Shown here one piece after another: positions 2,270 through 45,947 of a stretch of 64,000 nucleotides of DNA. Source of the DNA: Ophelia neglecta (Eukaryota). Location of the stretch: assembly GCA_965285935.1 (NCBI GenBank), contig OZ260665.1, positions 49,786,001 to 49,850,000 of the forward strand, given 5' to 3'. The notes below the pieces were generated by a model that searched no databases, was not told where the DNA came from, and saw nothing but the letters and a program-made list of their open reading frames with translations. How positions within the stretch are numbered: the stretch's first letter is position 1; each line of letters opens with the position of its first letter. The translations under genes and the position numbers were made by a program.

Positions 2270-2418
2270 CTTTTTATCCTCAGAGAGACGGACCCGCCTG
2301 CGGATTTGATGATATCCATCGCCTCCTTGTGGAGCAGTTGTGCGCAATCATGGTTCTCCACGGCGACCAGCACGTCCCCTCGCTGTAAGGTGCCATCTGC
2401 CGGACTCCCCACAAATAC
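2270..2418 (-). CDS. Gene A (Zasp/PDLIM-like PDZ protein) coding exon 2: C-terminal half of the PDZ domain; gene continues beyond the left edge
   Basis: ttacag|GTATTT acceptor and AG|gtaagc donor; 149 nt, phase 0 to 2. Encodes VFVGSPADGTLQRGDVLVAVENHDCAQLLHKEAMDIIKSAGGSVSLRIKR (GSPA..L..GD, HxEA PDZ pattern). Confidence 0.93.
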
Positions 2419-2824
2419 CTGTAAACAGTATGAGAATCGTGTAGAGAGGGTATAGACCAATGAATATTGATACCAACGATTTTATTGCTAATGACATGTA
2501 CAGGTCATAACATCCATCCATTATATTACACCAGTCCCCGAATGCGTCTACTTATGTTGCCTCCCTAGAAATTAAACAGTTTTAAAAATACGGATTACTT
2601 GTTCCCTCTTAACTTAAGCGTTAAGAGGGAACAGGGTTGCGCGAAAAATTATATTTTTATTGCATATAGGTGTAGCTCACAAGCTCCCCAGCCGTATGGA
2701 CAATATTGATTTCCATGACCTGTACGGTTTAAAAAAAAGGTATTTCAGTAAGATCGTCTATAATTATCAAGTATCCAGGCACCAAGCCGGAGTAATCATG
2801 ACTTAAATGGTTCGATGGATTTTC

Positions 2825-3055
2825 GTTATTGGTGGGCCTTTGATTTGTGTTATTGGTGGGCCTTTGATTTGTGTTATTGGTGGACAGTTGATTTGTGTTA
2901 TTGGTGGGCCTATGATTTGTGTTATTGGTGGGCCTTTGATTTGTGTTATTGGTGGGCCTATGATTTGTGTTATTGGTGGGCCTTTGATTTGCGTGATTGG
3001 TGGGCCTTTGATTTGTGTTATTGGTGGGCCTTTGATTTGCGTTATTGGTGGGCCT
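2825..3055. repeat. 24-bp minisatellite GTTATTGGTGGGCCTTTGATTTGT, about 9.6 copies
   Basis: Head-to-tail units starting at 2825, 2849, 2873 ... 3041 with few substitutions and no spacers. Confidence 0.97.
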
Positions 3056-4674
3056 GAAATATGGGATATGGTTATATTGCCAGCTAGGTGACCAAACCCG
3101 GAAATATTTTCTCAAGTGAGGAAGCATGTACTTCACCACCTAAAGAGTTTCAGACTGCATAAATCATGGGTTAACCAAATCAGAAAACCCTGCGTTGCAT
3201 AAACATAGGGCATATCTTAATTACTATAAGTCTTGAATTTACGCCATCGGCTAAGATGGTGATTAAGTAAAACAGCTGCTGCTGCCGATGGACGTATTAA
3301 ACCGCAGCTCCCCAATGTTTTTGATAACAACACCCATTAGTTTAGTACAAGTTCTTACGCCGAATGCCTGCTTTTGTTTTTATTGCATCCAAGTTTTAAG
3401 TTTTTATCAGCGCACAACTTTATTGACATAAAACATGGACGTTCAGACAAAACAACCGTTGACTTACACCGCATTCCAACTGCGACTCGTATTACTTTTA
3501 CCACCATCATGAGTATTAGAAATCTAACTGCCATCCGCAGTTATTCTTACCACCCGTCAGGGCACATAGGGTAAAATATCTGTTCTGAGCCACGAGGCAT
3601 CAAGGCAACCAAATCGACTAAACGTACACTCCTGAAAAATGGCAGCTTGGATTATTTTGCCAGATATGATCGATGTTGGATAAATAAGTAAAGAAGTGGT
3701 CTGATATTTCAAAAGTCCTGTGTGAGGGGAGGGGTGTCTGTGTGTCTGAGTGTGTATGGCTGTGTGTGCGGGTGTGAGTGAATGAAACCACATAAACTGC
3801 CATACTGCCCGTGGGGTAGCAAATGAAGTCTTTTGAGTATTTGACCATATCATCATAGAAAAATTAATCCACTGCCAGCATTAATACTCCCATAATGCTT
3901 TATTCAGGATGTGGAGACCATCATTTAAGATGGGCTATAAGCGTTCAGTCGTATTTTAGTATAAAGGCCTACTTCTAAGAGACCTGCTCGTTGGCGCACG
4001 CGCAGCGCCGGAAGGATGTTTTCTTGGCACTTGAGGTACCATGACACCGCAAAACAATGTTAAAAAAGTAACAAGCTAAAACGAACTCCTTGTTACTTAT
4101 CATCACCATCCTAAAGCCCTGGAGCATTATGCCAGCAATACACTGTATACTACAGATGTTAAAACTCCTCGCGCCATATGGATCCAGGGAAGATTTATTT
4201 ATCAGCTTGGACCACATGTAACGATTTTAGAGAGCAATCAGTATTACAAATAGTGTAGACTATAAGCCGTGATCCAGCCAATGAAATATAGGCTATAGGA
4301 TCTGTCAGAATTAGCCTACATGCCAACAGGCGGTGATTATACTAATACATGTCCACGTTAGCCTGCTCTGGCCCGCTCCGGTATTAAAGTAATGTACTCA
4401 GTTACTTCACCGGCCTAGACATCAGCCAAAGAGAGTACCAGTTAAATAAAGGATGCTAGGGAATCCTCCGACATGATTTCCAATTACTAGACCTCCGGTA
4501 TTCCGAAAAAAAATACACCGAAAACAGACTGCCGACTGCAAGCAGCTGTCTAACCCTGCGATCGTCTCGTTTTATTGAAGAAGACGAAAATGCATAGGCC
4601 CATTCATGTAGAACCATTTGGTGTTGAAATCTTATGCAAATTATAGTTCGCATATTACATACCCTTATTGTAGG

Positions 4675-9330: not shown

Positions 9331-9447
9331 CCTCTGAACGGTGAGGGGGAGTTTGAAGTCCTTGCCGCCCGTAAGACGGAAGCCCCAAGGGGTACTGAGG
9401 GCGTCCCTGTGTACCCGGACCTGGCGTTCGCTATATGGCCCTGTCAT
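9331..9447 (-). CDS. Gene A coding exon 1: N-terminal half of the PDZ domain (missed by the ORF track)
   Basis: gccATGa start; MTGPYSERQVRVHRDALSTPWGFRLTGGKDFKLPLTVQR (39 aa), then AGG|gtaggt donor in phase 0, in frame with exon 2418-2270. PWGFRL is the ALP/Enigma/Zasp PDZ signature. Confidence 0.94.
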
Positions 9448-9691
9448 GGCGGGACTGGCTCTCTCGACGAGATCTAGTCCTCCATTATTCGACTAGAGAG
9501 CAGTCTCGGCCATGCGTCCTTCCGCAGCTAGACCGACTCAAGGAAACATGAGTTGCTCCTACAACGAGGCTCCACGCCCGCTTGCCTCCCTCTCCCGACC
9601 CATCCAGGAACTTTACTTAGCTCTGTACACCGCCCGAAAAACGAGAGGGAATGCTGGCAGCCACACTCGGCATGCTGTATGCTATTCCAAG

Positions 9692-12700: not shown

Positions 12701-14368
12701 TATTGTAAAGAAAGCAATTCTCTACTTAACGAAATGTTATACTGCACCCTAGGCATGTAGAGTTCACCAGGCAACAAACCATATATCATCAGGGTTACAT
12801 GAAGTAAGAAGATCCCTCAAAGAAAACTTCTCTGTATAAAGCAGTATTATTAGATTTTATTTCTCCTTTATTATACGTCAATTTGTTGTTTCTTCCAATC
12901 ATTAATGCTATTCTTATTGAATGAAATTTAATGTGAAAAAATGCAACAAACTTATTTGAAAAAGCCTGCCTTCAATACTAACATTGGGCTAAAAGAACCC
13001 CGGGGGCACAGCCTCCCCCCCCCCACCCCCACCCCCACCCCACCCGACACGCACACAATTCATATGCCAATACATCATTTTTAGCCTAGTTCGAATGGCA
13101 AATCTGAAAAGGTAAATAAAGTGGTTTACGCAACTGTTATAGGTGGGAATGGAAGTTTTTTTGAAATACCGACTACAGAAAGCACACAAATGCGCTCTGG
13201 GACAAAATGGTTCCTGGCAAAATAGGCAAAATATGTGACAAAATGGTTCCATGTTTTACTCTTATGATACGTTTCTAACAAGAAATAAACTTAAATCGCA
13301 AGCCCTCGATAAAAGAAAGTGACAAAAAAGCAAGTGATCTTCAATTGACTTCCAAACTCTGTCCACGTTATCAAATTATCAGTTCGATAAACATTATCCT
13401 GACTGTGATGTAAGAGGCCACCTAGCTGTATGGGGTAGCCTTAGGAGCCCCCGTTGTGGCGAAGAGGCCCCCGGGGCCTTTTCCCTAAATACTATGTCAA
13501 ATGTGAATGACACAAGATTTTTTACATCGAATAAGATACATAGGGCCATGACCCTTTTGGCACCATTAGTTTGTGACAAATCATCGTTTGCTCATTTCGA
13601 GGCAGGGATTATATAGTTTTCAGCACTTGTAATATCGCCTATATCATTGTGACATATATTGTCATTTTCATAAATTAAATCCATATCTAAAAATCATATT
13701 AAATCATATTCTAAATCCAATGAAAAAGTGTTTTCTTTCCCACTTCCGATCAGATTTCTGGCCTTGAGGTTTACCAGAGGTGACTAATCCTGAAACGGGG
13801 ACACATTCACCCGAGTCAGAAGTCAGGAGTGGGGGCGTCTGTGCCAACGACGCCGCATCAAAACAGTACAAGACTGAGTCTAAGCAGGACTCGTGGGCTG
13901 GAGCTAGGAAATAACTGTGTACAACTTCTCTCAGCAGCCTCCATCTTAGCCAAGTAACGTTAAACTTGCGGCAGGCAATCGAGGATCGCCTTACCGATCA
14001 GCTGGTAAACTGCGTATACTTGGGATTTATTTTTGGCCCGACTTCGAAAAGTTGTGCAGTGAGTTTTAGTGTTGTGCACTGACATCTACAAGCAGTAATC
14101 AGTGCAGTGAGCCAGCAGTCAGGAGTGCTTGATACCCAAGGCCTATACGTCAACTTCTGGTCGATCCACACCTTTCTTCGCGGAACCACCATTTTGCTTT
14201 CTGTGGGGAGCGAAATCGCCGGTCATAAGCCGGCCATCCCTACGTGATCTATTTGTCCTGGTTGTATACAGAGGATTTCAAGTTTCTTTAATGACCACCG
14301 GAGGAACCTGTGGGATATTCTGACCAGATATTAAGTTTTTTAGGACATTCTAGGATTAGTACCACACG

Positions 14369-14470
14369 ATGACGGAAACGATCTGGCTACAGCGTCCTAG
14401 CGGGGATGTGCCGTGGGGGTTTCGACTGACCGGCGGCAGGGACTACCAGCAGCCCCTAACAGTACAGCGG
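14369..14470 (+). CDS. Gene B (Zasp-like PDZ+ZM protein, no LIM) exon 1: PDZ N-half
   Basis: MTETIWLQRPSGDVPWGFRLTGGRDYQQPLTVQR, then CGG|gtaggc donor, phase 0. Confidence 0.95.
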
Positions 14471-20100: not shown

Positions 20101-21054
20101 GACTGGTAAAGATTAGATATTCAACAAGAACCTGTTTTATATCATTTGGCTGATTCCCATATACGGAAAATCCTTGCTAATTAAGAATTTGATTTTGTCA
20201 AAAATTGGTGAACTACAATCACTACAAACATTGTGTTGAAATCCACCATATTCCTTATGCTATATATATCACTGGTTTATTTTTCATACCGCCCAAGTTG
20301 CATATAATACTTATACATATATATAGTATGAAGGTGCTTGGCAACAATAGACATGCAAATAACAATTACCTTTGCGTACACAAGACACTTTTGATTACTT
20401 TCATTCACAAGAAAATGGTTTTGGCACATTGGCAACAGGTTTTTGACTAAAGGAAATTAATGACACATTTAACATCCGGTACGGTGATAAACTCGATTGC
20501 CAACTGCCAACAAAAGAAATGCCCCATTTTGAAACGCCAATGTGTGGCAGATTGGTAAAACCGGTTGTGGATGCCCGGCAGACAAAGCAACATCATTACA
20601 TAAAGATAGTCCATTAGATCGGCCCGAATTATCAGGAGCTTTGTGTCAGAGGCCTACACACGCCTATACATTAACGCAATCTCCTTAACAGTGAATACAC
20701 TTGTAGTGCAAAACGTAAAGTTGAAAAGGAAGGCTATGTGAGCCTTGTCAATATAGGTCTTCTCGTCCTATTTTTCAATAAGGATTATCTCGTACGTATT
20801 CTTCCAGCTTGACTTTTCATTTTAATTTCACAATTTTATAATTCAAACATTTATTAAGTCTTTCAAAGCCAACTATTATAATTTGAAAGCTGTCCATCAA
20901 CAATCTTCAGCGGCTGGTTTAAGAACGCCCTTGTAAACTGACATACGGAGAAATAAAAAACATGCGTGTTCATGACATTTTAACGATACAAATGTCATTG
21001 TTATCATTTGATTTCTTCGAAAATGAAATGACATGATATGAATCGTATTTACAG

Positions 21055-21203
21055 GTAACGCCCGGAAGTGTAGCAGCCACAGGATTAACACAGGATGACG
21101 TCATACTGCGGATCGGAGACTCGGACACTAACGCGCTTACGTATGCACAAGCTATGGAAGTCATCAAAGAATACGGCAACACGCTACAGCTTTGCATATA
21201 CAA
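21055..21203 (+). CDS. Gene B exon 2: PDZ C-half (missed by the ORF track)
   Basis: tttacag|GTAACG ... AA|gtaagt; 149 nt, the same length and phase as gene A exon 2. VTPGSVAATGLTQDDVILRIGDSDTNALTYAQAMEVIKEYGNTLQLCIYK. Confidence 0.93.
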
Positions 21204-24124
21204 GTAAGTAGTTTTTCCGCGTATCAGTGTTATTATATAACGATGTCAGTAAAGTTTTGCTTTGTTTCAAATGTGTCTTGAAATGTACAATCGGATTTTT
21301 CATTTCTTTGGTCTGTTGGTTTGGATAAAGAGGTGCAATTGTTAAACTATTTTTAAGAAGATGGAAATTTCACTTCAACTTTTTTCGTTTGTTTTCGACT
21401 CCTTGCTCAGAGTGAGCTGGTTCATAATGTCTCAGTATTTAAAAAAACCTTTTTGAAATGCCAAATTATAAATAGTCACACCTGTTGCGTACAGGATTTT
21501 ACCAAATTGCATCTTTTTCCGTCCAAAATGACCTTACCAGCAGTAAAGTATCTTGTTTACTATAACTTTTATCAAGGCCAGCTGTCGTAAGCCCGGTTTG
21601 GTCATGTATATGACTTTAGGAGTAGTTGGCTTGGTGTCAATTCCAAGGTTATTCGTCTTCTGAGTAGTGACGTACTGTAGTGTATATGATGGAGTAAGTG
21701 ATGGGTAATCCACTTTCTATAGGTCAGGTCTCTGTCAGGGTCTGCCAGCAAACGAGTTTTATTGTCGTGTGCATGCAAACCAAGATAAATATGTGTGGGT
21801 ATAAACTCGGTTTGTTTTTCAGTTGTTGAACTATACGGACAAATTGGTAGAATCTGTATTTACATATTTTGCGAGATTCTTTAATTTAAAGTGATAAGAT
21901 AGTAGTAAATTCCATGTAACACGCTCGAGCCCTGATTATGGTAGTAGTTTATTTTTCTCATCGTGTAACATTGCGTTGCCATTGTGCTGTTATTCGTGTA
22001 CATCTGGTGATACATAACAGTGATCTTTATAGAAAAGTTGAGATGATTACGAAGAAGAACAGGAAAACTCGGTTTTTTTTACTAAGACACGGATGAGCAA
22101 TCGATAGATTTCTTTATATGTATATTATAGGCACTAAAATTGAAACGCATCGATTTCTTCGCTACAGGTTAAAGTTCTTTTAACATTTACAGTTCGGAGC
22201 GACATTCTAAGGATTCTACTGCGCAACACGTTACGCGTTTAATGCTGGTTTAATGCCCTATTGATAGTAGTTGCTGGGCGTTCCGGCACGAAACTTTGTA
22301 CTACTTTGATAAGTAGTATCCACCAATAGGCTGAGTTTGGAACCATTGTAGGGTTACAAGGCCAGTGTGCGAGACGTATTGCTACTCGCTTGCCCCCTAC
22401 CTTCGGTATGCCAATAATGATGTACACATAACTGATGGTTGGTATTCCGCACAGAGAAACTAGATGTGGCGTAAACCGACGAGCAGCTCTCTGCCAGGAA
22501 TTCTAACAAGGAACACATGCTAGCGCTCCAAATATTAAACAGCAAGATGCTGAGTCAGCAATAAATTTTTGGCATAAACTTTCATGAATTGGTTATAAAG
22601 TATCGGTAGTAGTTATGCCGTTATTTAGCGATATTTGGGCCAGTTTTTATCTGTCGATACTTTTTCGGTGGGTTAGTGATTAGCTAGGTACCCCATACGA
22701 TTAAGGAGCTTGGGTATAGAAATAAAAAGTAAGATCAGTTATTCGCTTTCACTTCATCACACAATATGAGGTGCTTATTATTAAAATCCGCGTTTGTAGC
22801 CTTCGTGGATGGTTGAAGCTGATTAAACTTTATTGCTTCCCACTTCCCCTTTAACTCGGAACTATATCTTGCCCCCACCATTCATGCCTGCCTACCCCCC
22901 TTCCCACAAAGACAAAGTCATACTATATAGTGGGCCACAACAACACTTGAGAAGACGCATGAATAAGCAAGTACTGTTTATAGGTGTGGAATGGGAAGTT
23001 GACTATTAAAAAGACGAATTCATCGCTTGTCATTAAGACGTGAAACTAAAGGGCTATTAAACGAAAATAAAAGTTATCAAACGTAAATAAATCACCTACA
23101 TATCTAAATCAGGAAGAAAATTTCCCGACTTTGTGCAAGTTCCCACTCTTCAGAAAATTAATAATAAAATCGTATTTATGAGTGAATAGATTCAAAGCGC
23201 AGTTGGTCTCCATTGGAATTCCAATAGTTTGGTAAATACCTCACTGCCCACTTGGACAAAAATGTTTTCAAAGAGAAAATGAAGTACCTCGACATGTTCG
23301 GGGGCACTCCATATGTGGTAACCTCAACATTCAGTATGTGAAAAGAAAACTTTTCTTTTTACATTATCATAACGTTTCCTGTTTTGGAAATGTGCTTCCA
23401 TCAGCATTATTCCGATTTCTACAACATACAGGGCGTTTACCACGAAAGGTGAATTATATATCTTTGCAAAATCATGTACTTTTTCCACGATTTTAATAAA
23501 AAAAAACACGAAGCCCTTGGGTCCAACTAACGGGCCATGTAACTAACGGGACACTACAGATTAAAAAATATTTTCAAAATTCACAGATGAATATTACACC
23601 AATAAATCAAAATACAACACGCGCCTTAAAGGCTAAGAGAGTCTCGATGACTCTCTTTTATACTGTCCAGGCGTGGATTTTAGTTCCCATTGTTTCAAAA
23701 ACTACATAGTAGAAAAATGCAAATGGCTTTGAGTGATCTCTTTGCTTTTCCTAGAGGGAAGGGGCATGTGCATCTGGCTCATCGAGGAGATATAACCTTT
23801 TTCTCTTTAGTATGTACGGACCTTTTACGTCCCTACACGGTTTTGTGTATTTCAGATAGTTCTATAGGCTTACATTTAAGAGAGAGTCCATCTTACACTC
23901 TCTTAGAGCATATTTCGGCTTATTTGCAGTAAGGGTACATGCAGTTAACGGTTCATCCTAATATATGTGATATCTGAACTAAGAAGTGTCTAATCTTGAT
24001 GAATATTTATGCTTTGTCTGCCGGGTATCAACTCCCGTTGCTGAAGCCGAATTTCTCTGTCATGGCAACTTTGTTTTCACCATAACCACTGATAGCTACT
24101 GAAAATGCGTTTTATACCTGCCAG

Positions 24125-26958: not shown

Positions 26959-27737
26959 ATTTAGCAAACTATTAATAATTACATCATTTGGAAGACAAAC
27001 GCTAGAAAAGATGGTTATGTTCGTCTACTTAAATGTTTTACATTGGGCCGCGACTGCTGTCTACACGAAGGTATAAATATAAGTCGGCCTCCAATTGTCT
27101 AATGGCAGTCTTTTAGTTGGCGAGGAGACGTAGTTGAATGTTGAAAAACTATGGTCTTTGACACCATGGTTATTGCCAATGTTCAATCTCATTTTTATAA
27201 AAGACAATCAGCATTCGATGATATAATTAAACATGGAACTATGACTCCATTTAATACATGTCCCTAATATCTAATGAGTTTCTACTTGTTTTTTACCGAT
27301 AATTGATGAACTTTCATAGAAGTTTTCTTTGCTGTTGAGTTAGTTGCGAGCTAAAGTGTAAAGACATAGAAAGAGGCAGTCTGACAAACTCTCTTAGAAG
27401 TTCCCTGTTAACATCTGGAATGCGTAGATAGTGGTGCTCGAGAATACTATATGGGTTGTGCTTAGCAGTTAATGCTCTAAGTTTTCAAACTATGTCAGAC
27501 TGTGCTCCAGTTCAAATGTTCTATGAAACTGCTAACAATCTTACGAGGACAAAGCTTTCTTAACAACATATAGTAGGCATATAAGGCTTACAGGTCCTAT
27601 GTGGTATATTTGTTTCTATTTTCCACGTAAACCTGAATCTACATAGCAAAGTAAACCTTTTTGAAACAACTTTAGGAATAGTACCAATTAACAAGTTTTC
27701 AAAATTTCCCTCTGACGTTATCTCTTCTTGTTTTCAG

Positions 27738-30099
27738 GCGGGGTGGCGGACAAGGGTCTCCGGCACAACAGGTAGCGGGGGCACGTCCCTCTAACCAAAC
27801 TTCTGGCACGCATGGTTTGTTCGAAAACATGTACAGAAGTTCGGAGGCCGTGTCACGCAGTTCGCCTGACCAGCAGCAGGGGATGTCCGCAGGCTCGGCT
27901 CACCCCCAATACCAGACCCAGCGATCAATTGACCCCTACAAGCCCAGTGCACCTAAGCCTTTTATGTCACAGTTCTCCCATGATGGTTACAATGTTAGTA
28001 ATGTTAACTCTTCTGATTCTCGGCCGATCAATACTCACTCCTACCTGGGATCTACCCCTGATTCTTCCTATCCCATCCACCCCCAATCTTCTCTCAACTC
28101 TTCGCAGTTCTCTCAGTCTCCTTACGGAAGCACAGTAGGCTACTCCGACGATTATAATGCACCCCAATGTGACATTCAGCCACCATCTTACAAAGATGTA
28201 AACTCAAATAGAGATGAGGTTGCTTACTCGGTAGGTGAAAGTAAGTCCAAAGAAATACCCGTACAGTATGATGGCTCTGGGTTTTATCAGCGCGCACAGC
28301 CTGCCCCATCTAGTACCATCTTACCCACAAATCAACCTCCTAGGGGAGCCATTGTTGACCAGCAGCAAATGTACGATAATAGCCAACTGAATGAGCAAGA
28401 TAATCACAGAATGGAACAAGAGTATGCAAAAGATCAAAATAACTATGAACAAGATCATGTCCGTGAACAGACAACAGAGGGTAATTATCGTATTTCTCAG
28501 CAAGGACAAGGTTACAGCCAGCAAAATATACCAAATCAACGGGAACCTGATCATTTTAGTGGATTGTATAATCAAGGAGGACAGCAAAGCTACAGACAAC
28601 CTGGGGACGGGTTAGCAACACAATACCAGAATATGCAGCCAGAGCAGAAAGAGGTCGAATATCATGCCTACAGGCAGCCCGAACAGGGCAGGCCTCAATA
28701 TCATGTTCGACAAGAACAGGATAACCCACAATATCGTGGCTACTTGCCACCGGAAGCATCGCAGCAATATCATGCTTCCCAGACCCCATTATCACATGGG
28801 TCAGATTCCGGTTACCCTTGTACCCCGTCAATGTCTTCATCAGTAAGCGAGCTATCTGATCACTCTTCTGGCCACTCCGAGAGCCGCCAAGGGCCACAGC
28901 AAGCCACAATTACTGGCAGCTACTCATTTGCTCCTACCGATGAAACAATTGAATTTCATCCTGTCATGGCACATCAACAGGCCAAAGAGCCTGACATGTT
29001 TCAGCCTGTTCCAATAGTTGGGAGCCCAGGTGGTCAGAGTCATCAAGCTAGTTATGGCCTGCAAAGGGGTATTCAAAACCGAGGTGACCCAATTCCCCAT
29101 ACCCAAAATAGTTACGAATCGGCCAATGAGTCTTCTCCTGTAGAAGTATATGGAACAGCTATATCTCACTCTCCAGTAGAACCAAGAACACCCGATGAGA
29201 CATTAGAACAGTTTGGGCCTCCAGTAAGCCATGAACCTTCAACTCCCAAGTCTAGTGAGTGTCCACTCCCTCCTCCTCCTCCTCAGCCATATCCAGTCGG
29301 TGAAAGTCAAGCTCAGCAAGAGGCATTTTCTGGTTTGCAAAGACAACAATCACTTCCCCTTCCGCCACAACCACCACCGCTACAAACTCAACAAAGTTAT
29401 CATGGGTATCACAACCAAGATTTTCCACCACCGCCAACACCTGATTCTCCCAGCGTTCCCTCGGCCCCGATGATGCGAGGTGCACCTCCACCGGCTCCAC
29501 CTCTGCCTGACTCCCAGCCCCCCGATTATTCTCCCAACTTAAGCTCGTCCTCTCTAAGCAGTCCCAACCCACCGTCCGCAGATACATGGGCTCCTCCAGC
29601 ACATCACCCCTTAGAACCAAGGAAACAAGAACTAACACTTAATTCGGCATCACCATATGTGCCCTATAGCCACCAACAGCCAGCAGTTCCCCATTCTGCC
29701 AATACACACCAGCCTGCCAGTGCCTATATGACTAACGTACATGATCCTACTTCAGGACAAGCTGCTGGTGTTCCCCCTAGTCCCGGACAAAGTTTTTCGC
29801 CAACTCTTCCCTGGATAAAGTCGGCTTCTACCCAGGACCCTAGTTTAGGCATCCCTGAAGTGTCCGCCCCTACTCTTTTGGAGGAGAATAGAGCAGACCC
29901 GGCCACTGCTGGGCCTTTTGATAAGGCTCCAGCGGATGACGCCCAAACTAAACACGGGCCTCCTCCATCGGCGCCACCCCCGCCGCCGCCGCCACCTCCC
30001 CCACCCCCTCCATTACCACCGAATATATTGTCTGCACCAACAAAATCGTGGAAAGACAAAAACAAACAAGCTGAAAGCCCCAGCTACGAGCCAGTCAAG
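27738..30099 (+). CDS. Gene B exon 3: giant 2362-nt Gln/Ser/Pro-rich low-complexity exon (possible short form 27738-27771)
   Basis: tcttcttgttttcag|G acceptor in phase 2, open through the 784-aa ORF to AAG|gtaatg (phase 0). An internal CAG|gtagcg at 27771 is in the same phase. Confidence 0.88.
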
Positions 30100-30193
30100 G
30101 TAATGATAATGCACGCCTTTCGGTATTGCAGGTCGATTACTTCTAGAATAGACACATTAGCTATATTGTAACAATTGTGTGCAACAGTTGAGC

Positions 30194-31898: not shown

Positions 31899-32126
31899 AC
31901 CGCCCAATGCGCATATGCCTCGGTACCAGGAAGCTTTGAACCTTCCTTCTTTTGATGACCGCCCAGTCCACAAACCAAAGGGTGCTACTCAGACGCCGGA
32001 GCAACCCCAAGATAATGCCTCGATGGTGTCCAATATGCAGTACAATACCCCCTTGAATATGTACTCAGAAGACGCTGTTGTTGAAGCATTTGAAGGACAG
32101 ACTGGGGCAAATGTCACTGGTGTCGG
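31899..32126 (+). CDS. Gene B exon 5: ZM (Zasp-like) motif
   Basis: ccttacag|A ... GG|gtaggt; contains VSNMQYNTPLNMYSEDAV, matching the QYNxPxxxYS ZM pattern. Confidence 0.92.
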
Positions 32127-32486: not shown

Positions 32487-33283
32487 GTAAGTGGCAATGT
32501 AGCAGTAAATTAAGCACTATATTGAAAAATGGGTTTTGGAAATTTTTAGGGACAAGACAGTTATAAAATCGATACCACGCTTTCGTCTGCGAGCATGCCG
32601 CTTAGTTAGTGAAGTTAGCTTGGGGCTTTTTTGAACTTCGTTCATAGCCTTTAGTTTAACGAAATTTGCATGGTAGACAATTTTTCATTCATCACCAAGG
32701 CATCAATAACAAAACGGACGTTAGACCAAATATTTTCCCAATCAGTATTCTATTGATTTATTACTTAATAGCAACGGGTTCTCCTCAGAACATTGATATC
32801 CCGATAACACCTGGATAACGCCCGATAACACACAACTTCTAACATTAATTTTGCCATCATATATTCGATTTTATTTTATATGGTGCTAAGGAGACGCGGG
32901 TATCATTTCGTGTTCTGTATTATAAATTACTTTAGTGGCTGCTGGTAGCTTTAATAGGGGAAGGTCATCCATACATCCACACTGCACGATACCAAATCGA
33001 TGGTAATTCAAATTCGCATATAAAAAAACTAAGCTTCACTTTTCGTTGCGTAATTTCAACCAGAATAAAGAGTTATTCGGCTTTTGAGATATGAAACCCC
33101 TCCGAAAATATTCACATGTTTGTTATCCCATAAATTTATCCGCACATGATAACCAAGTATATTTTAAAATCCAGCACTTCTTCTAATATGATGCACCAAA
33201 CATAACCATCACTCCATCCTATTCACCTAAACATCTCCTGCATATTAACCACCGCTTTGATTTGTTTTGCGCTTTGCAATTAG

Positions 33284-33445
33284 CCTATGAACGGGCGCCA
33301 AGAGGACCAACGTCAGACGACGAGCTCAAATTTACTGGTGTCAACCGACAAAGCACCATACCATCTAGGTCCTTCCAGATGGTACAGCAAATGACGAAAA
33401 ACACGCCAGAAGATTCTGGCGTGGACACGACCTCCCTATATCCAG
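33284..33445 (+). CDS. Gene B exon 7: type-A repeat 1
   Basis: 162 nt, phase 1-1; LKFTGVNRQSTIPSRSFQMVQQMT; G|gtgaga donor. Confidence 0.9.
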
Positions 33446-33632
33446 GTGAGATGGTGGCCATTGCAGACAGGTCAACCTTGCAGAGTCCGAAGTTCAACCG
33501 TACCCACGTCGCATGAAACCAATCGTTTTTATAAGCTAAAAACATCAGGCATAATTATAACAAAGAAGTTGAAGGGTCTCTAAAAATGTCTCTAGCAGGC
33601 TCTTGGGATCATAAGAGATGATTACTTTGCAG

Positions 33633-33776
33633 GTGGTCATGCAGAAAGTGGGGTAGACACGCAACCCATTGGCGACTATGACCAGAAGTCTATCAGATAC
33701 GTAGGGAAGAACATCCCCTCAAAGTCGTTTAGAATGCTCCAGAACCTCACAGGTGGAGAGCCGGAGCCTCTTAATG
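33633..33776 (+). CDS. Gene B exon 8: type-A repeat 2 (missed by the ORF track)
   Basis: 144 nt, phase 1-1; IRYVGKNIPSKSFRMLQNLT; tttgcag| acceptor and |gtagga donor. Confidence 0.92.
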
Positions 33777-33900
33777 GTAGGACCTCCTCTAGTTTGAATG
33801 ATAAAAGGTTCACACGGATTAATCATGTTTTCTTATCATGAAGCATTATATAATCTGGTTCTTTGATGTCAGTATAACGGTATGTTTATGAAATTTGCAG

Positions 33901-34095
33901 AAAGTGCACCTAATCAACAACAACAGAAGTCCAGAAGAAGAAGACCACCGAACCAACCCCAGAACCCTAACTATTATTCAGATGATGCACAAGATTCAGA
34001 CGGTGGCATAGACAAACTTAGTTATGTTGGTGGCAACATCCCGTCCCGATCTTTCAAGTTACTGCAACACGGTCTGGGAGATGATCAACATAATG
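33901..34095 (+). CDS. Gene B exon 9: type-A repeat 3
   Basis: 195 nt, phase 1-1; LSYVGGNIPSRSFKLLQHGL. Confidence 0.92.
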
Positions 34096-34810
34096 GTTGG
34101 TATCCATAAAATTATAGTCATTTTACAGGTTGATTACTTTTGAAATAGAAGGTTAAGCTTGTTCTTTTAAAAATTAAGTAGTGGTATGCATTAATTTTGA
34201 GTGTCTTAACCCTATTAAATCATGTTATAAGTTTTGATATTTTGGAATTTTTGAAATAAACTTTATTGCTGCTAACATAGTAGATGAATGTCACCAAATT
34301 CCAATGTGATTAAGCGCACATTTAAATTTTACTAGTTACGCTCAGTTTATTTTCGTTGCCCTAACAGTTTCCCCAATATGTGTCTTGTATTTTTGCAATC
34401 CTCATTGTAACACAACAAAAGCAATGTTATCTCCGCACACTTCTGAACAACCTAACTTCAAAATCTGAAGCAACTTATGCATTTAAGTCACGATTTGTCA
34501 CAATATATGTTTTGTTCTGCATTGCTTTTGTTATGTTCTCATTGGCAAGTCATCTATCTTTTTTGTCAACCCTTGCTTTCATATCATGTCCAGTTCAAGG
34601 TTTTATGCTTTCAAAATTTGGTATATTACAAACAAGGCATGCATGTTGAAACATTTGCCTTTAAATATTGGGCAACGCGATATTTCATCTAAATAAATGT
34701 CCAAATTATTTCGAAATGAATTCTGCTGTAAAACCATAAAGCCTGTTGTTCGATAAGTCCCGATTGGCTGATTCCCCGATCTGAGTACGCCTATTCTTTT
34801 TCTCACACAG

Positions 34811-34929
34811 CACCCTCTCCTCCACCTAATGGGAACGCCCCCGGCCAAGGACGCACTGTAAAGGTCGTTCGTTTACGTGCCCAAAATCAACCGCAAGCGC
34901 CGGATGACGATGGCTGCACAGACTTCTAG
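34811..34929 (+). CDS. Gene B alternative last exon 10a (short isoform; missed by the ORF track)
   Basis: Strong acceptor ttctttttctcacacag|; APSPPPNGNAPGQGRTVKVVRLRAQNQPQAPDDDGCTDF*. AATAAA at 35521, 35802 and 35933. Confidence 0.88.
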
Positions 34930-35520
34930 TTTGCGCATTTCACGTGTTACGTCAGCCACCACGTGATCAGCGTTGAACCAATGAATAGTCCATTGTGTTT
35001 TCAGAAGCTCAGAAGCTTTTGTATACCTTTCTTTTGACGGAATAGCTTACTGGTTTCATGGTGCAAATTACAACATGATATGTGCAAAAGTCATGTCACA
35101 TATTCAATTTAAACAAGGATACATCCATAGTTTCTGTGCATGGCCCATATGGAGAATAGGATTATGTTTATAAATTGTGCCAAGCCATACGAAATGGACT
35201 AAAGAAAATGGATACCATCAAAGGGATTCTTTTCCTGCAGTATTCTTTGTAAAAATGATATAGCGTATGGATTGCCACATAACTGCATGACTATCTGTGA
35301 ATGATGTGCATTGTATGTGCTTGAGTGCTGTGAATTCTTATATGAGTCACCCTTGATGTCACTTCTCACTTGATGACGTTACTTTGGTATTTGACCTACT
35401 GAAATAGTTTATTCAATTTGATTGAGACAAGTTTCAATCACTTTGAATGAATGCCAATTTACCATAATTTATTGTACTGTTAAATATGCACCACTCTTTC
35501 TTCGAGTGGTTTTTTATCAA

Positions 35521-35938
35521 AATAAAACAAGAAACTTCCCATGAATTTAGGTGCGAAACTGCGTGGTCAATAGTTAATGACACAAATTATTTATTTGTTT
35601 TTTTTTCATATGAAAAAAAGTAGGCAAATTTTATAACCATATGAGTAACTTGTTAGATGTAGGATTGTTTGCTTGCCGACATCATTTGATGTCGTTTTAA
35701 CATTGTTGATGTATTATGGACAACTTTTACAATTTGAAATTTTCACTCCACTCTCTTCAATTGTACCTTCATAATCTGCTGTAAAATTGCCTTTATGCAA
35801 AAATAAACTTCAGTTTTGTTTTCAAGAAATCTGGTTTTTCGCATATTACCCAAATAGGCATCTGGTGGCTTTGAAGCAATTTATGTTATAGATTGTGTTT
35901 TACTTAAGTAATTTATGTTAACTTGAAATTACAATAAA
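35521..35938 (+). terminator. Candidate polyadenylation signals of the short isoform
   Basis: AATAAA at 35521-35526, 35802-35807 and 35933-35938, downstream of the 34929 stop; which one is used is unknown. Confidence 0.45.
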
Positions 35939-36696
35939 GAAAATACATTGGGTAGATTTAAGTTAGAATGTTTAGATTTGTGAAATAGACTTAAACATAA
36001 CGAAACGTACATTGACTGTACAAGTCACGACTTAACATGACATTATATGTAATATTATTTTAGGGGTAGGAAAATTGAATTATGAAAAGTATTTTAGGGG
36101 TAGGCAAATTGAAATATTAGAATTAGTTTTAATACCAAAGTAAAATGGCGGCTTAACGCTACGGACAAAGGACGACGCCCTTCCACCCCGCCAGATCACA
36201 TCTCCCTATGAACCTTTAAAATATATACAAGTTTTAACTGCATTCACAGTAAAGTCTTTGCAAAAAATAAATAAAAATTGTCACATTAGAGTAATTTTGT
36301 TTTGAATAAATGCTTTCTGAGTGTGAACACATAAAACCTCATAAAACAATAAGGACAATTTCGTGTAAGTTATATGGCTAGCATCAAATTACATGTCCCA
36401 AATCCATAACTATGCTCTCTTTGGACTGATATCACTGAGGAAACATCAATAGTTTTTCATTGTTCCCTAAAACAAATGACACTGTCCTTGTGCTACAAAA
36501 TAGGTCCCTCCCTTTAGAGAATGCATCACTGAAATGACCTGTTTCAAACAACGCGGCCAGCGTCACCATCTGAAAGGGTATTCGCATTGCAAAGTTAAAT
36601 AAGTGATACTATTTGAAGAGAACATAAAAACAACCAATCATTGCAGTAAAGTGAGAAGAACAGTATAGGTAAATATTTAGTCATTTTCTTATCCAG

Positions 36697-36843
36697 AAGC
36701 AAAGTTGGGTACTGGCGAGTACAGCGATGACGAAGACACTGGTTATCCCATGGACAAGATGTGCTATTTGGGTAAAGACGTTCCTTCTAAGGCCTTTCAA
36801 TTAATACAAGGGGTATATGCTCCAGACTCCTCGGATGCTAAAG
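36697..36843 (+). CDS. Gene B exon 10b: type-A repeat 4 (long isoform)
   Basis: 147 nt, phase 1-1; DKMCYLGKDVPSKAFQLIQGV. Confidence 0.88.
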
Positions 36844-36961
36844 GTAATTGTTCATACATCCTTCCACTTTTTAATAAAGTAATAATTCATAGCGCGTTAA
36901 TATCCATGTAGTATGCAAATATACAAACTGGTTGCCACTACATCCGCTGGGTTGTTTCTAG

Positions 36962-37117
36962 TTGTGGCCAGCGAGAGAAGACTTCGTCGTCGACGTCAGA
37001 AGTCACATGATGCCGAAAAAGATGAGGATGATGAGACTAGCGCCTTCGACGAGCAGGCATATCTGTCTGGCCAAGTGCCTATTGTCAGTGGGGAGGCCAA
37101 ACCAAGACCTCTAAGAG
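36962..37117 (+). CDS. Gene B exon 11: type-B repeat
   Basis: 156 nt, phase 1-1; FDEQAYLSGQVPIVSG; G|gtaaga donor. Confidence 0.87.
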
Positions 37118-38503
37118 GTAAGAGAGCATGCCTCCTGTTGTAAATAGCATCTTCAGAATGGATACGTTAATTAAATACAACTCTACACATCTGCCTACGA
37201 AAAAGTGGCAGCGGATTCGCATAAGACAAAGAGAAATCACCAATCAAGTAAAAACCGTTGAATAGGCAGATGCAGGAGGCGTCAGACGCGAGGTACCAAT
37301 TCCTTATTTCAAAATTGTAAATATGTATGTTAAGAAACATTTGGAGGAACTTGCATATTTTGCATCGTATTATTGTCCATCCCTATATACGGCTCGCATG
37401 ACACCTAAAAGACATTTTGCATACGGGCTGTGTGAAAACAACGGGAATTGGTACCCGCGAGACAAAACAAAAAGATTAACCATGAAACGTCCATTAAATT
37501 GGTCGAAATTCACTAGGAACAACCGGCCACAGCCACAGAAAACTTGACCCCACTTTCTGGAGAGCACATAATACAATGAAACACTCGGGTTTTTTTAAAG
37601 TCATATACAAACAACCAATTGCTATCATAATTATAAGCGGTGTTTTAATTTATGCATTCTGTCGATAAAAAAAGGTCCTTACATTATATGTTTTGTATTC
37701 AAACATTATTTATTTTTTCTTTGATGATCACATAGTGTCATTATACATTGCCGCAATGTGCAACAGTTTTTCATGCGGTGATCACATAAAAACGGGTCAG
37801 TGGCTAAGGCAGAACAATTATGAAATATTCCATAAGAGGGAGTATATTACGGATTTAGCTCATTCACAAATTTGAGACTTAGGATGGATGAGTCTAAGAA
37901 ACACAACACAACAGATTGATGTATATAGACATCGCATCCTCAAGAGAATATACAAATCCTCAATTATGTAAAAAAAAAAGTGATGTAATAACTGATAAAT
38001 CAACAAAGTCAACCTATCACAACTGCATCTGAAACATATGATGCTGCTTCAGTATGAATGCATATTGGCTTTAGCCCTAGGACGAGCGGAATATATTTTA
38101 CTTAAAGGCATTGCAGTCTTTTACTGCGAATGTTTTAAAACAAGGGCAACTAGAAACCATACAAGTGCAACCTATAACAGTGACCTTGAATATTTACTGA
38201 CTCTCTTACGTCTGATAAAATCATTTATAGTATAACATATGCATGGATATAGTACTATATGCATCGTGAGGATGGATTTAAGACTAGCATAAAAACAGCA
38301 CCCCACCAGCCACATCCTTTAAAAAGATTAATTTTTAACACAAATCTGCGCAAGTTCTCATGTAACATATAATTAGCTTTAAGTGGAACATGTTCAAGAC
38401 TGCAGTGAGTGCCTTGTAGTAGATAACAAGCTTCATTAGTTATTATTGCGTCTTTGTTTTACAGCAGGCTAATAAGACATAATTAGTTGTTATCTTTTGA
38501 CAG

Positions 38504-38650
38504 AGGCGCTTATCGATGAACAAGAACACCAGGATGAGGAGGAGGGGGAGGCGGACAAATACAAACAACCTTTCGACGAAAACGAGTATTTGTCTGGGAA
38601 GGTCAGTTTCCTAGGTAATGAACCAAAAGGATTTGACAGAGCAAAAAGTG
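38504..38650 (+). CDS. Gene B exon 12: type-B repeat
   Basis: 147 nt, phase 1-1; KQPFDENEYLSGKVSFLG. Confidence 0.87.
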
Positions 38651-38754
38651 GTACGTTTAGTTTACTCCTCGCAATTTGAACTATCCTAAATCGTTTAATT
38701 GATTTATTAAACTCGTAATCTGACACTAGCTTATCATTCACTGATACTTCACAG

Positions 38755-38841
38755 AACCAGATGAAAAGCCCGAGTGGGTAAACAAATCTTCCAAGATGAA
38801 GAACATCGATGAAAACACTTTTCCCAGAAGCAATAGGGAAG
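38755..38841 (+). CDS. Gene B exon 13: short type-B variant (missed by the ORF track)
   Basis: 87 nt, phase 1-1; EPDEKPEWVNKSSKMKNIDENTFPRSNRE. Confidence 0.82.
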
Positions 38842-39017
38842 GTATAGACTCACTTGTTTCACAGGAAATGTTGACTAGTTAAATGCCCCATTTGAGTTTT
38901 GTGTCGGTACATGATCACTTAGTAGAAACTTAGTTTTCCTCGTTAATAGCCTAAGCATCAAACAAAACCTGCACATAAATATGTCTGCATCAAGCTGTCT
39001 TTGACAATTTATAACAG

Positions 39018-39110
39018 AGCACGATGAGCAACCCGATTGGGTCAAGAAAACAACGCAAATGAAATCACAACAATTTGATGAAAGCACATTTGTGAAAACG
39101 GCCCATGAAA
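39018..39110 (+). CDS. Gene B exon 14: short type-B variant (missed by the ORF track)
   Basis: 93 nt, phase 1-1; EHDEQPDWVKKTTQMKSQQFDESTFVKTAHE. Confidence 0.85.
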
Positions 39111-39295
39111 GTATGTTAAAATTAAAAAGGTGTGATTAGATTAGCTGCACTGTTTTAATTCATTCGAGCTGTTTGGAGTGTGAGTATACGTACTGTGTGT
39201 GGATAGCTTGTTTGTCGGACACGTTTGTTTTGTTTTCTACCTTCTTAAAGATATAATACGAATTTCACAAGGGTTCTTATTGAAATCCATAACAG

Positions 39296-39388
39296 AAGCA
39301 GGGGACCAGCCGGACTGGATTAAGAAAACGGAGCTAATAAAGTCTAAACCCTTTGACGAAAGTGCCTTTGTTAGAAGTGACACTGAAC
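39296..39388 (+). CDS. Gene B exon 15: short type-B variant
   Basis: 93 nt, phase 1-1; AGDQPDWIKKTELIKSKPFDESAFVRSDTE. Confidence 0.85.
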
Positions 39389-39724
39389 GTATGTACATTT
39401 ATTATTACTTAGAATTTATCAAGAAAGATAATTATGCAAAGTACTTTTATAAGTGCAAGAGGAAAGGTCCAGAAGGCATTATAGTGGTGAAGTGGATAAG
39501 ACTGAAGACAACTGGTGAAGAACAAACAAGTTTGCAAGCATGATGACGACTTTATTGAAATTAAACTCAAGAATGAAAACGTGCATAGCACACGCTCTCG
39601 GAGCCGCGCAAAATTAGTGAAACAGGAACATAATGAAAATAGATGGTTTATTTTAAACCATCTATTTTCAACAGTGTTGACCAATTAGTATAACAAACTT
39701 TATTTTGCTGTTTTCCACATTTAG

Positions 39725-39844
39725 CGGAGAGGGAGGAAAGTCCTGGTCCTCGCATGAAGGAGGAGGAATACGACGAGAACGCCTACCTGTCAGGACAGAT
39801 AGGGGTTGTCAGCGGAGTACCTCCTAAACCAATGCCAGTTCATA
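39725..39844 (+). CDS. Gene B exon 16: type-B repeat (missed by the ORF track)
   Basis: 120 nt, phase 1-1; EEEYDENAYLSGQIGVVSGVPPKP. Confidence 0.86.
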
Positions 39845-40198
39845 GTAGGTTCCGTTTAGAAGAGCAAATACGTTAATATTGTATTCATTTGAACGCCATA
39901 CCAATTGTCACAGTATAAGAGAGTATATTGTGTGCGGGCAATAACGAAAATAACTGGTTACCACTTGAAACAATTACCCGTACTGGTAATCTTCAGTCAT
40001 TTGACTGGGTTATTATCGTGTGATTGCTCAACATGTATTTTGACTTTCGTAATTGGTTCGTAATTGCACTGTACGCCACTGAACACCCGCTTCCATATTG
40101 TGATCGTTTCACAGATAAAGGAGCAGACTCTATGATATAAGGCAAAAGTGCGATAAAGCTGCTTTAAAAATTATTTCAGTTCGTTAATATTATTTCAG

Positions 40199-40498
40199 TA
40201 CGGTCGACTGTTAAACCCCCCGGTAAAAACTTAGAGACTGAACTGCCAGACTGGGCCAAAAAAAGGCGCCAACAAAAGAGACGCCGGCGCGAGCAGCAAC
40301 CGGAAGCTATCGTGCAGAACGGGACTGCAGGACCCGAACAAAAAGCAGAGGATGATGCTAGCTTGAAACTTCGCCAGCAACAGGAACAAGAGGAGGAGGA
40401 ACGACATAAACAGCCATTCAACGAGGACGCTTTTCTGGCCGGGAAAATCAATATTCTCCGAGGATCTGTTGATAGGGAACAAGTTCCCAGAGCAGTTG
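40199..40498 (+). CDS. Gene B exon 17: type-B repeat with basic and acidic insert
   Basis: 300 nt, phase 1-1; LPDWAKKRRQQKRRR...KQPFNEDAFLAGKINILRGSVDRE. Confidence 0.87.
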
Positions 40499-43400: not shown

Positions 43401-43954
43401 TTGTCAAGGTTTGTGAACATTCTCATACTTAAAAATATTCCATTTAATTGTAATTCAAAGTTCTTGCAGTGTTATAGGAAGTTGTCAGTATTCATTCTTT
43501 CAAATGTATGTTAAAACTCTTGCGTGGAAAGTCAATAACATATTCCAATTCACTAAGAAGAATATATTAAATTTAGGCTACGTTTTACTTCAATTAATAT
43601 CTCAAATTCGCCATTTGAGACTAAAACAAATTGATTTGTCAATAGGAAGTCGCTGATCAATTACAGGTGATATTTGATGTTCATTCAATGTGCCTGGGTT
43701 ATTTTTTTCCATGGTTTGACACTTTTTAATGACTATGTAACTATAAGACGATACTTTGTAACACTCAACGCCATACTGTTAGTATAATTGACCAGATACG
43801 GCCATTAGGGTAGGAGAAGGACAAGTCCATTGGGACATCAGGAGGAATCTCGGTATGTTGAAACTCTCACCTCGACCTAACTCAGACGTGATGGGTCAGC
43901 TACTGTAATCATACTCTAGCACCTCTTTTTAAAAAAAGCTCATTAATAACTTTA

Positions 43955-44156
43955 ATGGCGGATGTAGGGTATTTCAAAGAGGTTGCGCTATCAGTGTCTA
44001 TGATTGCCTCCGTCCTGAGGGGTAGTTGACTTCAGCCCCCCACCCCCCTCCCCGCCCACTTCCATCCCCACCCCAAACCCCTCTAGAGGCTTCCTAGAAT
44101 AACTTGTGCAGGGGAGGGGTCCTAATATTCCCGTGCTGCCCCTCTAGAACAGCCAT
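43955..44156. mobile_element. Degenerate GC-rich MITE-like relic
   Basis: Imperfect terminal inverted repeats ATGGCGGATGTAG / CTAGAACAGCCAT around C-rich and G-rich internal tracts. Confidence 0.35.
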
Positions 44157-45673
44157 GGCTAATTACCTTTGTAGGTACATGTAACGAAGTCACTGGAAAT
44201 GTGCCAAACACACCCTAATGCCAGTATAATATATCCTTTGATCTACGAAACTAGAACGAAAACTGCCAATTATTTCTCAATATATACAAACCAAACCAGA
44301 TGGTGATCGACAAGGTCCGTCACCATACTAGTCAGCCTACTTGTGCATAACATAGGGGCCTGTATATACCGGCTTATTGGGCCCGCATTAAAGATAATTT
44401 AATTAAATACTTTTCAATGAAACCATAAATGCTAATACGTTATAGAAATTATGATATTTGCAATTAAAACAAATTCGAGATACATTAACTTCTATGTGGA
44501 ATTCAAACGCAATCCATTGTGTTTTGTCTTTTGGTCAAATAAATGTGGTGAATGAGATGGAATTGTCCCAACAACTGTAAATCGACATTATTTCTCATGC
44601 ATTGATACAAAATGCATGTATAAGGTCTATATATATACCAATGTGACAGTAATAAATGTCGACGCTAGTGAAATAAGTTCCCACGCTTCATCAAACAAAA
44701 TTTCAAAGCAATAAAATATCCACAACTAGATTTCATGACATTTCAGCTGCGATCCTTATAGGTGTAATCTGCCATCGAAGTAATAACAACTTCTGCAATA
44801 ACAGGCTTCGTGTATAACAAAATTATGCCTAAATAACAAAGCATTATAATCAGGCCCGGGGGCAAATAACATTCGCGGAAGGGACTGTAAAACAACCGAC
44901 TCGGTGTAATACTAACTTTGTCAGCTAAATAATTGTTGTTTTATTGCACTATAATTGAGGCGTTTTGTTTTGTGTGCTAGTGACAATTGAATAACAGACC
45001 ATGATACACATGTACATGTCATGTTCTGTCAGTAGCGATGTGCATACTAATTATTCAATCAAGAAGAATTTATGCAGGAATAAGCCGTTATGCTGTTGTG
45101 GTATGTTAACATCATGTTTTCCTACCAAAGCGCACTTTTCTAGCCTGACTATGCATAGACATGCACGATATTTTATTTCCACATGCACAGCAAATTGAGA
45201 TGAAGCATTATAACTTCAAATCAACCATCATTGGCTACCGGTAGGCTACCGGACAAATGTCCAGAACGAAAGAATCAAATGAATTTTCACTCCCCGGGGA
45301 TGATCTAGAACCGACCTGGGCCATGACGTTCACAAAATATCCTTCCTGCATTGTCTTCTTCGCACAAGTATTCAATTAAAAGTGGGTCGAAATCGGTACA
45401 AAACAATGAATTGCATCATATTTTATAGAGTGTTGGGTATTTCTGCCGTTTAATGTGTCGTGGTTTTTATTAAATTAATATAAACATGTAAGGCATATTT
45501 TACATTCATAATGTTACAGATTAAAGGCAAATTGTCAAAGCCAAACTTGTAAAATCAATCATGTGAAGATGGCAATGCACAAGTTGGAGGTTGAAACCAG
45601 CATGTTTCAGTGACACGGATGTCATCCTAGAGAGACCAGTTAGCTATCACTCAGTTTAATGTCATGTTTTCAG

Positions 45674-45823: not shown

Positions 45824-45947
45824 GTACTTTGAATAGGCTCTGTTATTGGCAGACAAGGGCGTAAATAGAAAAATAGTAACAGATTAAAGCTAAAAGCAAC
45901 TGAGCAAGATGTTTTGATAACATTTCCCTTTGCTATCTATCTGTCAG

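Follow-up and report, generated by a model that had tools for sequence, protein, structure and literature searches.

Genes A and B of this locus are old paralogues within the Zasp PDZ family, both of them PDZ-ZM genes that lack LIM domains. Two features of these family members seem to be new, namely conserved C-terminal tails that resemble the end of alpha-actinin and a derived Tyr at position alphaB1 of the gene B PDZ domain. We tentatively propose that [ST]-D-F tails are general ligands of His-type Zasp PDZ domains and that the Tyr of gene B detunes that protein's own reading of such tails. We regard this proposal, which draws on conserved sequences and structure models, as quite possible but somewhat short of probable.

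Within the window (the whole stretch of DNA analyzed here, 64,000 nt at G000:C8:49786001-49850000 in the 762 Mb genome of the eukaryote Ophelia neglecta), gene A on the minus strand and gene B on the plus strand stand head to head and are read in opposite directions from start codons 4.9 kb apart (Table 1). In each gene, the PDZ domain is split by an intron of 6.5-7 kb. The transcript-derived protein P0070 (597 aa) of a related species maps collinearly on the minus strand from position 9447 to a point 13.4 kb outside the window start. The last exon of gene A, which closes with ...SRQSRSMQALEAHMQAEGEGTSDF and a stop codon, is collinear with P0070 and with a second transcript-derived protein, P0044. 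The layout of gene B agrees with that of the transcript-derived protein P0005 and of an annotated Plakobranchus protein, P0032, and the ZM-like motif types of its short-exon array recur in both. The second PDZ exon of gene B is bounded by an AG acceptor at 21053-21054 and a GT donor at 21204-21205, and the exon preceding its alternative last exon 2 ends in ...NGPVK at position 49622.

Table 1. Features of genes A and B and of the spacer between them. Positions are those of the window unless a contig is named.
Feature	Position	Strand	Description
Gene A PDZ exon 1, from ATG	9331-9447	-	MTGPYSERQVRVHRDALSTPWGFRLTGGKDFKLPLTVQR; in the ORF list; carries STPWGFRLTGGKDF (PWGFRL motif)
Gene A PDZ exon 2, 149 nt	2270-2418	-	VFVGSPADGTLQRGDVLVAVENHDCAQLLHKEAMDIIKSAGGSVSLRIK plus 2 nt; Pfam PDZ match; matches residues 40-106 of P0070 in order
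Gene A alphaB1 His codon	2329-2331	-	From the translation; opposite the alphaB1 His of PSD-95 PDZ3; invariant in 12 A-type proteins
Gene A DUF4749 match	G000:C8:49773166-49773261		PF15936, 38.2 bits, above cut-off
Gene A last exon, ...EGEGTSDF then stop	L003:6572-6910	-	13.4 kb before the window start
Intergenic spacer between start codons	9448-14368	.	4.9 kb; 2.66 kb in a related species (L015)
Gene B PDZ exon 1, from ATG	14369-14470	+	MTETIWLQRPSGDVPWGFRLTGGRDYQQPLTVQR; in the ORF list; carboxylate-binding loop PWGFRLTGG; carries DVPWGFRLTGGRDY
Gene B PDZ exon 2, 149 nt	21055-21203	+	VTPGSVAATGLTQDDVILRIGDSDTNALTYAQAMEVIKEYGNTLQLCIY plus 2 nt; Pfam PDZ, 30.1 bits
Gene B alphaB1 Tyr codon TAT	21142-21144	+	Direct reading; opposite the alphaB1 His of solved PDZ domains
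Gene B large low-complexity proline-rich exon, open frame	27682-30168	+	829 codons
Gene B DUF4749/ZM-type motif	32026-32112	+	NMQYNTPLNMYSEDAVVEAFEGQTG; PF15936, 26.7 bits, slightly below cut-off; matches P0005
Gene B short-exon array with ZM-like motifs	33187-48835	+	Y.G..IPS[RK].F..LQ and FDE.AYL.G types
Gene B alternative last exon 1	34810-34929	+	APSPPPNGNAPGQGRTVKVVRLRAQNQPQAPDDDGCTDF then stop; ends ...DDDGCTDF; TDF at 34918-34926, stop at 34927-34929
Gene B alternative last exon 2	49745-49777	+	VEAEEEVTDF at 49745-49774, stop at 49775-49777

Some further features of the two genes were noted along the way. Two exons of gene A that lie 6.3-8.3 kb before the window start share an acidic motif (L005:1686-1811, EEEYQPASVHDLKKSF, and L005:3267-3698, EDEDYEQISVRDIRKRF, both on the minus strand), and P0070 covers the two regions consecutively with its residues 104-219 and then 217-247. 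The first intron of gene A holds a tandem repeat with several open frames (for example, PTNNTNQR units) at window positions 2732-3139, which looks like a minisatellite with a unit of ~24 nt. The large proline-rich exon of gene B is highly disordered and has a C-terminal run of ~15 prolines. A word search with its 829 residues matched a single ORF, and its identity to the same exon of a related species (P0001) was about 35-37%. Because the exon is missing from P0005, it may be alternatively spliced or lineage-specific.

The assignment to the Zasp PDZ family draws on the architecture of the two proteins. Both begin with a PDZ domain that carries a PWGFRL motif, and both contain a DUF4749/ZM motif and long disordered regions. 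“Zasp PDZ domain proteins” are recognized by a PDZ domain with this motif (Liao et al. 2016, PMC5081203), and A and B each have it at the N-terminus. The ZM motif (PF15936) scored above the cut-off in A and slightly below it in B, but the orthologous ORF of gene B is annotated with PF15936. The one or three C-terminal LIM domains of ALP/Enigma (PDZ-LIM) proteins in the strict sense are found in neither A nor B. A whole-genome search for LIM domains (PF00412) gave no match between C8:49.7 and 49.85 Mb, none appeared on A's strand when the next 50 kb downstream was scanned for LIM patterns, and A-type transcripts terminate in SDF without a LIM domain.

Elsewhere in the genome, LIM matches stood beside Zasp-type PDZ and ZM matches only at C8:41.99-42.01 Mb, 7.8 Mb away. 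This LIM-bearing family member (G000:C8:41989473-42007610, minus strand) combines a PWGFRM-type PDZ domain (LKHKDAQ, with His at the relevant position) with two DUF4749 matches and several LIM exons. Further Zasp-type PDZ paralogues lie at G000:C9:40780104-40785636 and G000:C7:69131158-69138951 (both minus strand), with alphaB1 His in LTHQQAS and MTHVQVK. A second divergent pair of Zasp-type PDZ first exons was seen at G000:C8:76656367-76656444 (minus) and 76667871-76667963 (plus), 11.4 kb apart, together with a matching second exon at 76649634-76649777 (MTHKDAQ, again His) and a weak DUF4749 match at 76598850. Head-to-head pairs may recur across the family. All four other Zasp-type paralogues in the Ophelia neglecta genome have His at alphaB1.

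The preliminary description had pointed to a residue contrast between the PDZ domains of A and B, and reading the sequence confirmed it in every part. Residue 30 of the second exon is His in A and Tyr in B, and GSPA and GD in A are replaced by GSVA and DD in B. The two second exons are equal in length (both 149 nt), share identical intron phases, and align without gaps, as expected for paralogues, and both exceed the Pfam cut-off for PDZ domains. In phmmer comparisons with solved structures, the Tyr of gene B aligned to the His of Dlg1 PDZ1 (VTHSKAVEALK), and the His of gene A aligned to the His of ASHEQAAIALK in PSD-95 PDZ3, which we take to be alphaB1 His372. AlphaFold2 modeled the PDZ domain of the A-type relative P0070 with pLDDT >90, and helix alphaB of this model begins exactly at the equivalent His69. 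These alignments and this model place the Tyr at alphaB1, as first described, rather than outside it. DNA contigs from three runs laid over 20950-21350 showed an identical Tyr codon, although they come from one sample that is probably the source of the assembly and are therefore not independent support. The His/Tyr difference is not a chance oddity: the His is invariant in 12 of 12 full-length A-type proteins and present in four other paralogues, and the Tyr recurs in the two nearest relatives of B.

The rule that had been invoked to interpret this contrast is also documented. In class I PDZ domains, the alphaB1 His bonds Ser or Thr at ligand position -2, and in class III domains an alphaB1 Tyr contacts Asp or Glu at that position (PMC7138185). 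The same source includes Phe among the residues accepted at ligand position 0, and states that a single residue seldom sets PDZ specificity on its own. With its His, the domain of A falls into class I. The domain of B has instead the alphaB1 Tyr common to nNOS-type class III domains, but it is otherwise of the Zasp type.

The C-terminal tails extend the contrast in a different direction. Both predicted C-termini of gene B read T-D-F in the DNA, in each case directly followed by a stop codon, and so form class I motifs (Ser or Thr at -2, a hydrophobic residue at 0, and a free C-terminus), as the preliminary description had stated. However, gene A itself ends in a motif of this class (SDF), as do all 20 A-type sequences including the window's gene, and His is present in every one of these whose PDZ domain is present. 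These 20 are mostly spliced transcripts of other species, together with a protein of the annelid Paralvinella palmiformis. The idea of a private, asymmetric A/B pair is therefore not supported. When 12 full-length A-type proteins were aligned, the columns without variation included those of the PDZ core, His69, and the ZM motif, as well as G593, S595, D596, and F597 at the extreme C-terminus of a disordered region that shows little conservation elsewhere. The presence of a class I PDZ domain and a class I tail in one protein is thus conserved in the A family and ancestral in the B family. Because the A family makes this pairing, the combination is evidently not one that is avoided, and the Tyr of B was not needed for such a design.

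The tails read G-x-S-D-F in the A family and acidic-x-T-D-F, twice, in B. Alternative last exon 1 of gene B shows 75% identity in a related species with DDDGCTDF unchanged, and the orthologue of alternative last exon 2 reads VEVEDEVTDF after the same ...NGPVK junction. Zasp PDZ domains have alpha-actinin as their classic partner. In Ophelia neglecta, the last alpha-actinin exon (G000:C1:136035997-136036143, minus strand) ends in ...FSTALYGESDL, a canonical PDZ-binding end. Given this GESDL ending, the G-T-S-D-F of gene A looks like a copy of the classic ligand. Moreover, the tail of B-type proteins is TDF irrespective of whether the PDZ domain of the same protein carries His or Tyr, which suggests that a reader other than B's own PDZ domain holds it constant. 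A His-type Zasp PDZ domain such as that of A would be a reasonable candidate for this reader. In the literature searched, we found no description of conserved alpha-actinin-like tails or of a derived alphaB1 Tyr in Zasp-type PDZ proteins.

To place these features in time, we drew on a 44.5 kb contig of a related species, found through the large exon of gene B (P0001), which keeps the head-to-head pair, an LTYAQSM motif containing the Tyr, and both tails. The first PDZ exon of gene B is 94% identical to its L008 orthologue and the second 72% identical to the orthologous exon, with LTYAQSM kept; over the PDZ domain, dN was ~0.11 and dS ~1.6 (saturated). The tails and the Tyr-type PDZ domain of gene B are under purifying selection, because they are conserved while the large exon has only ~37% identity and the synonymous sites of the PDZ domain are saturated. 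In a full-library search with the second exon of gene B, the only sequences that combined Tyr with DD were the nearest ones, those of the window, L008, and P0002. By contrast, alphaB1 is His in the B-type proteins P0003 (from the annelid Owenia fusiformis), P0005, and P0032 (from the gastropod Plakobranchus ocellatus), the last of which combines its His-type PDZ domain with an ...ESATDF tail. Other B-like second-exon fragments carry Tyr, Phe, or Gln. In a tree of exon 2 based on 50 columns, the A clade was well supported and the window's B grouped with L008 and P0002, with the remainder unresolved; on a tree of this size, the Phe and Gln sequences were not treated as established orthologues of B.

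From the His of P0003, P0005, and P0032 and of the four other paralogues, it follows that His is ancestral at alphaB1 and that Tyr is a derived, lineage-specific state. This is at odds with the view of the Tyr as part of an original design, since Owenia, Plakobranchus, and one B-type transcript keep His and the Plakobranchus protein does so beside a TDF tail. The A/B duplication itself is older than the split between annelids and molluscs, and a recent inverted duplication is therefore not its source. We had considered such an origin for the pair and rejected it, as both types are already present in annelids.

One related species shares the head-to-head arrangement of the two genes, but in Paralvinella the 10 kb upstream of the A-type gene contained no B-type first exon, and in Plakobranchus a search over the same distance upstream of the B-type gene gave no A-type first exon. 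Over this distance, an old, fixed gene neighborhood is thus not supported. A blastn comparison of the spacer with that of the related species (L015) showed two conserved non-coding blocks, one at 9448-9634 (75% over 192 nt) and one at 13961-14039 (71% over 85 nt), which lie immediately upstream of the start codons of A and B, respectively. They probably represent 5' UTRs or core promoters. No shared central conserved block was seen in this comparison.

We used structure models to evaluate contact between the PDZ domain of A and the tail of B. A complex model of an A-type PDZ domain (P0070 residues 1-95) with the B tail encoded at 34810-34926 scored 0.43 compared to 0.15 for the best control, which lends weak support. 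In this range, most passes are wrong unless the proposed contact was likely from the start, and the score does not distinguish which family member binds. At least 82% of contacts were common to the runs, with a partner pLDDT of at least 47. The PDZ domain in this model is that of a related species, with a second PDZ exon 67% identical to the window's A, and in the exon-2 tree no sequence was closer to the window's A than P0070. Together with the conserved class I tails of B, the model is consistent with the part of the preliminary description in which A's PDZ domain binds B's tail. In the full-length AlphaFold2 model of P0070, which was built from a 12-sequence alignment, tail residues 591-597 had pLDDT <50, formed no strand, and were not docked. 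Because ~500 disordered residues intervene between the PDZ domain and the tail, this may be taken as weak negative evidence on intramolecular docking.

In the reading that we tentatively favor, the tails would be read by His-type Zasp PDZ domains generally, that is, by those of A, of the Zasp gene with LIM domains that lies 7.8 Mb away, and of the other paralogues. Binding of tail to PDZ domain could occur within one molecule or between molecules. As a result, the LIM-less A and B proteins might chain head to tail, or they might rival alpha-actinin for PDZ grooves. In B, the change from His to Tyr, with that from GD to DD, would probably weaken the PDZ domain for tails with Ser or Thr at -2, whether these belong to B itself, to A, or to alpha-actinin. 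The main role of B would then be to donate tails and to carry ZM repeats. Contact between the PDZ domain of A and the tail of B would be one plausible edge of this network and not the mark of an exclusive pair, and the wiring of PDZ domains to tails would sit beside the known ZM-LIM mechanism.

Other explanations need to be weighed against this general reading of tails. In Drosophila, Zasp52 has been described as binding alpha-actinin in a non-canonical way that needs both the PWGFRL motif and an extension C-terminal to it (PMC5081203), so the canonical PDZ groove may matter less in the Zasp family. If so, the change from His to Tyr could be near-neutral, with the Zasp PDZ domain working through its PWGFRL surface and extension and the tails being read by non-Zasp PDZ domains or by a phospho-dependent reader such as 14-3-3. 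We consider this rather unlikely, though it deserves to be taken seriously. Drift of this kind would agree with the mixture of Tyr, Phe, Gln, and His among B-like second exons of other assemblies, but the B orthology of the Phe and Gln sequences is unsettled by the 50-column tree, and the invariance of alphaB1 His in the A clade and four other paralogues indicates that the position is constrained in most of the family. Likewise, the PWGFRL motif needed for alpha-actinin binding in Drosophila (PMC5081203) is intact in B, and the tail is undocked in the full-length P0070 model, yet Tyr and DD are kept together in three related sequences despite saturated synonymous divergence, and the tails closely resemble GESDL.

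The Tyr could also mark a gain rather than a loss, in that the PDZ domain of B may have acquired a class III-like specificity for Asp, Glu, or phosphorylated Ser or Thr at -2 and may read acidic or phosphorylated SDF or TDF tails. Class III domains do use an alphaB1 Tyr to contact Asp or Glu at this position (PMC7138185), the carboxylate-binding loop of B is intact in a domain that is under purifying selection, and the Tyr is conserved among near relatives. Still, this gain is without a candidate ligand, and specificity is seldom set by one residue alone (PMC7138185), so we judge it improbable. Slightly more doubtful is the dedicated two-part scaffold of the preliminary description, in which the His-type PDZ domain of A receives the TDF tails of B, the Tyr of B avoids B's own tail, and the divergent pair is co-regulated. 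The location of the Tyr at alphaB1, B tails that are conserved and unchanged by B's own alphaB1 residue, the gene order kept in one related species, and the weak support of the complex model (0.43 vs. 0.15) would all suit such a scaffold. These points are offset by the invariant SDF tail that A carries beside its own invariant His-type PDZ domain, by the B-type protein P0032 with a His-type PDZ domain and a TDF tail, and by the lack of a partner gene within 10 kb in Paralvinella or Plakobranchus. Co-regulation is not favored by conserved non-coding blocks that adjoin each start codon separately, with no shared center.

Among known systems, the closest in architecture are Zasp66 and Zasp67 of Drosophila (PMC3591300, PMC6910826), which, like A and B, have an N-terminal PWGFRL PDZ domain and a ZM motif, lack LIM domains, and occur in a genome with a LIM-bearing Zasp paralogue. 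However, the two fly genes are reportedly restricted to insects, whereas A and B occur in annelids and molluscs, so these are probably independent LIM-less lineages. In the literature searched, neither fly protein was described as having a conserved [ST]-D-F tail or an alphaB1 residue other than His. LIM-less Zasp isoforms block the growth of fly Z-discs, with ZM-LIM binding limiting growth (PMC6910826). In a bivalve, the Mytilus coruscus protein PDCP-1 (AKS48171.1) has, by the parts of its description that we draw on, an A-like layout: it is ~70 kDa, LIM-less, and Gln-rich, with a PDZ domain at 20-92 and a ZM motif near 500 (PMC7573561). From the same parts of that source, it is a protein of muscle and myostracum with the highest expression in adductor muscle, foot, and mantle. 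It is treated there as a shell-matrix, actin-binding protein, and its C-terminal tail and alphaB1 are not discussed in those parts (PMC7573561).

The proposed reading of tails by Zasp PDZ domains has a parallel in the PDLIM/ZASP-alpha-actinin system, which shares with A and B a His-type Zasp PDZ domain (that of A) and acidic ligands ending in S-D-hydrophobic (GESDL vs. the GTSDF of A). PDLIM/ZASP PDZ domains reportedly bind the C-terminus of alpha-actinin (...ESDL) and the E-[ST]-[DE]-[DE]-L tails of myotilin and FATZ. The difference is that in A and B the ligand-like tail stands on the PDZ proteins themselves and ends in Phe, not Leu. Binding of these domains to C-terminal tails is attributed to von Nandelstadh 2009, as cited in PMC9751615. 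A PDZ domain and a matching C-terminal motif within one polypeptide, as in A, permit autoinhibition or head-to-tail assembly, and PDZ proteins that bind their own C-terminal tails include X11alpha and tamalin (PMC2891790). By contrast with such proteins, the full-length model of the A-type P0070 leaves the tail free. NHERF1 is another PDZ protein that binds its own tail and, like A, has a PDZ domain and a matching C-terminal motif in one polypeptide.

Zasp/PDLIM proteins organize Z-discs, and their mutations cause human myopathies. A more ambitious version of our proposal would be that annelids and molluscs have an undescribed muscle PDZ-tail network, in which tails that mimic alpha-actinin chain the proteins or compete, and in which B has, in one lineage, switched to a class III-like Tyr, becoming a reader of phosphorylated or acidic tails or a non-reader, and a multivalent donor of tails and ZM motifs. 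We consider this a long shot. As a hypothesis built from sequence, the wiring of PDZ domains to tails is placed in a setting, the muscle scaffolds of annelids and molluscs, that has barely been studied. The contrast of His and Tyr between similar PDZ domains, with candidate ligands in the same genes, offers a ready system for weighing the share of alphaB1 in PDZ class. If the proposal is true, the conserved tail of the LIM-less members would add to this family a second, testable wiring principle, from PDZ domain to tail.
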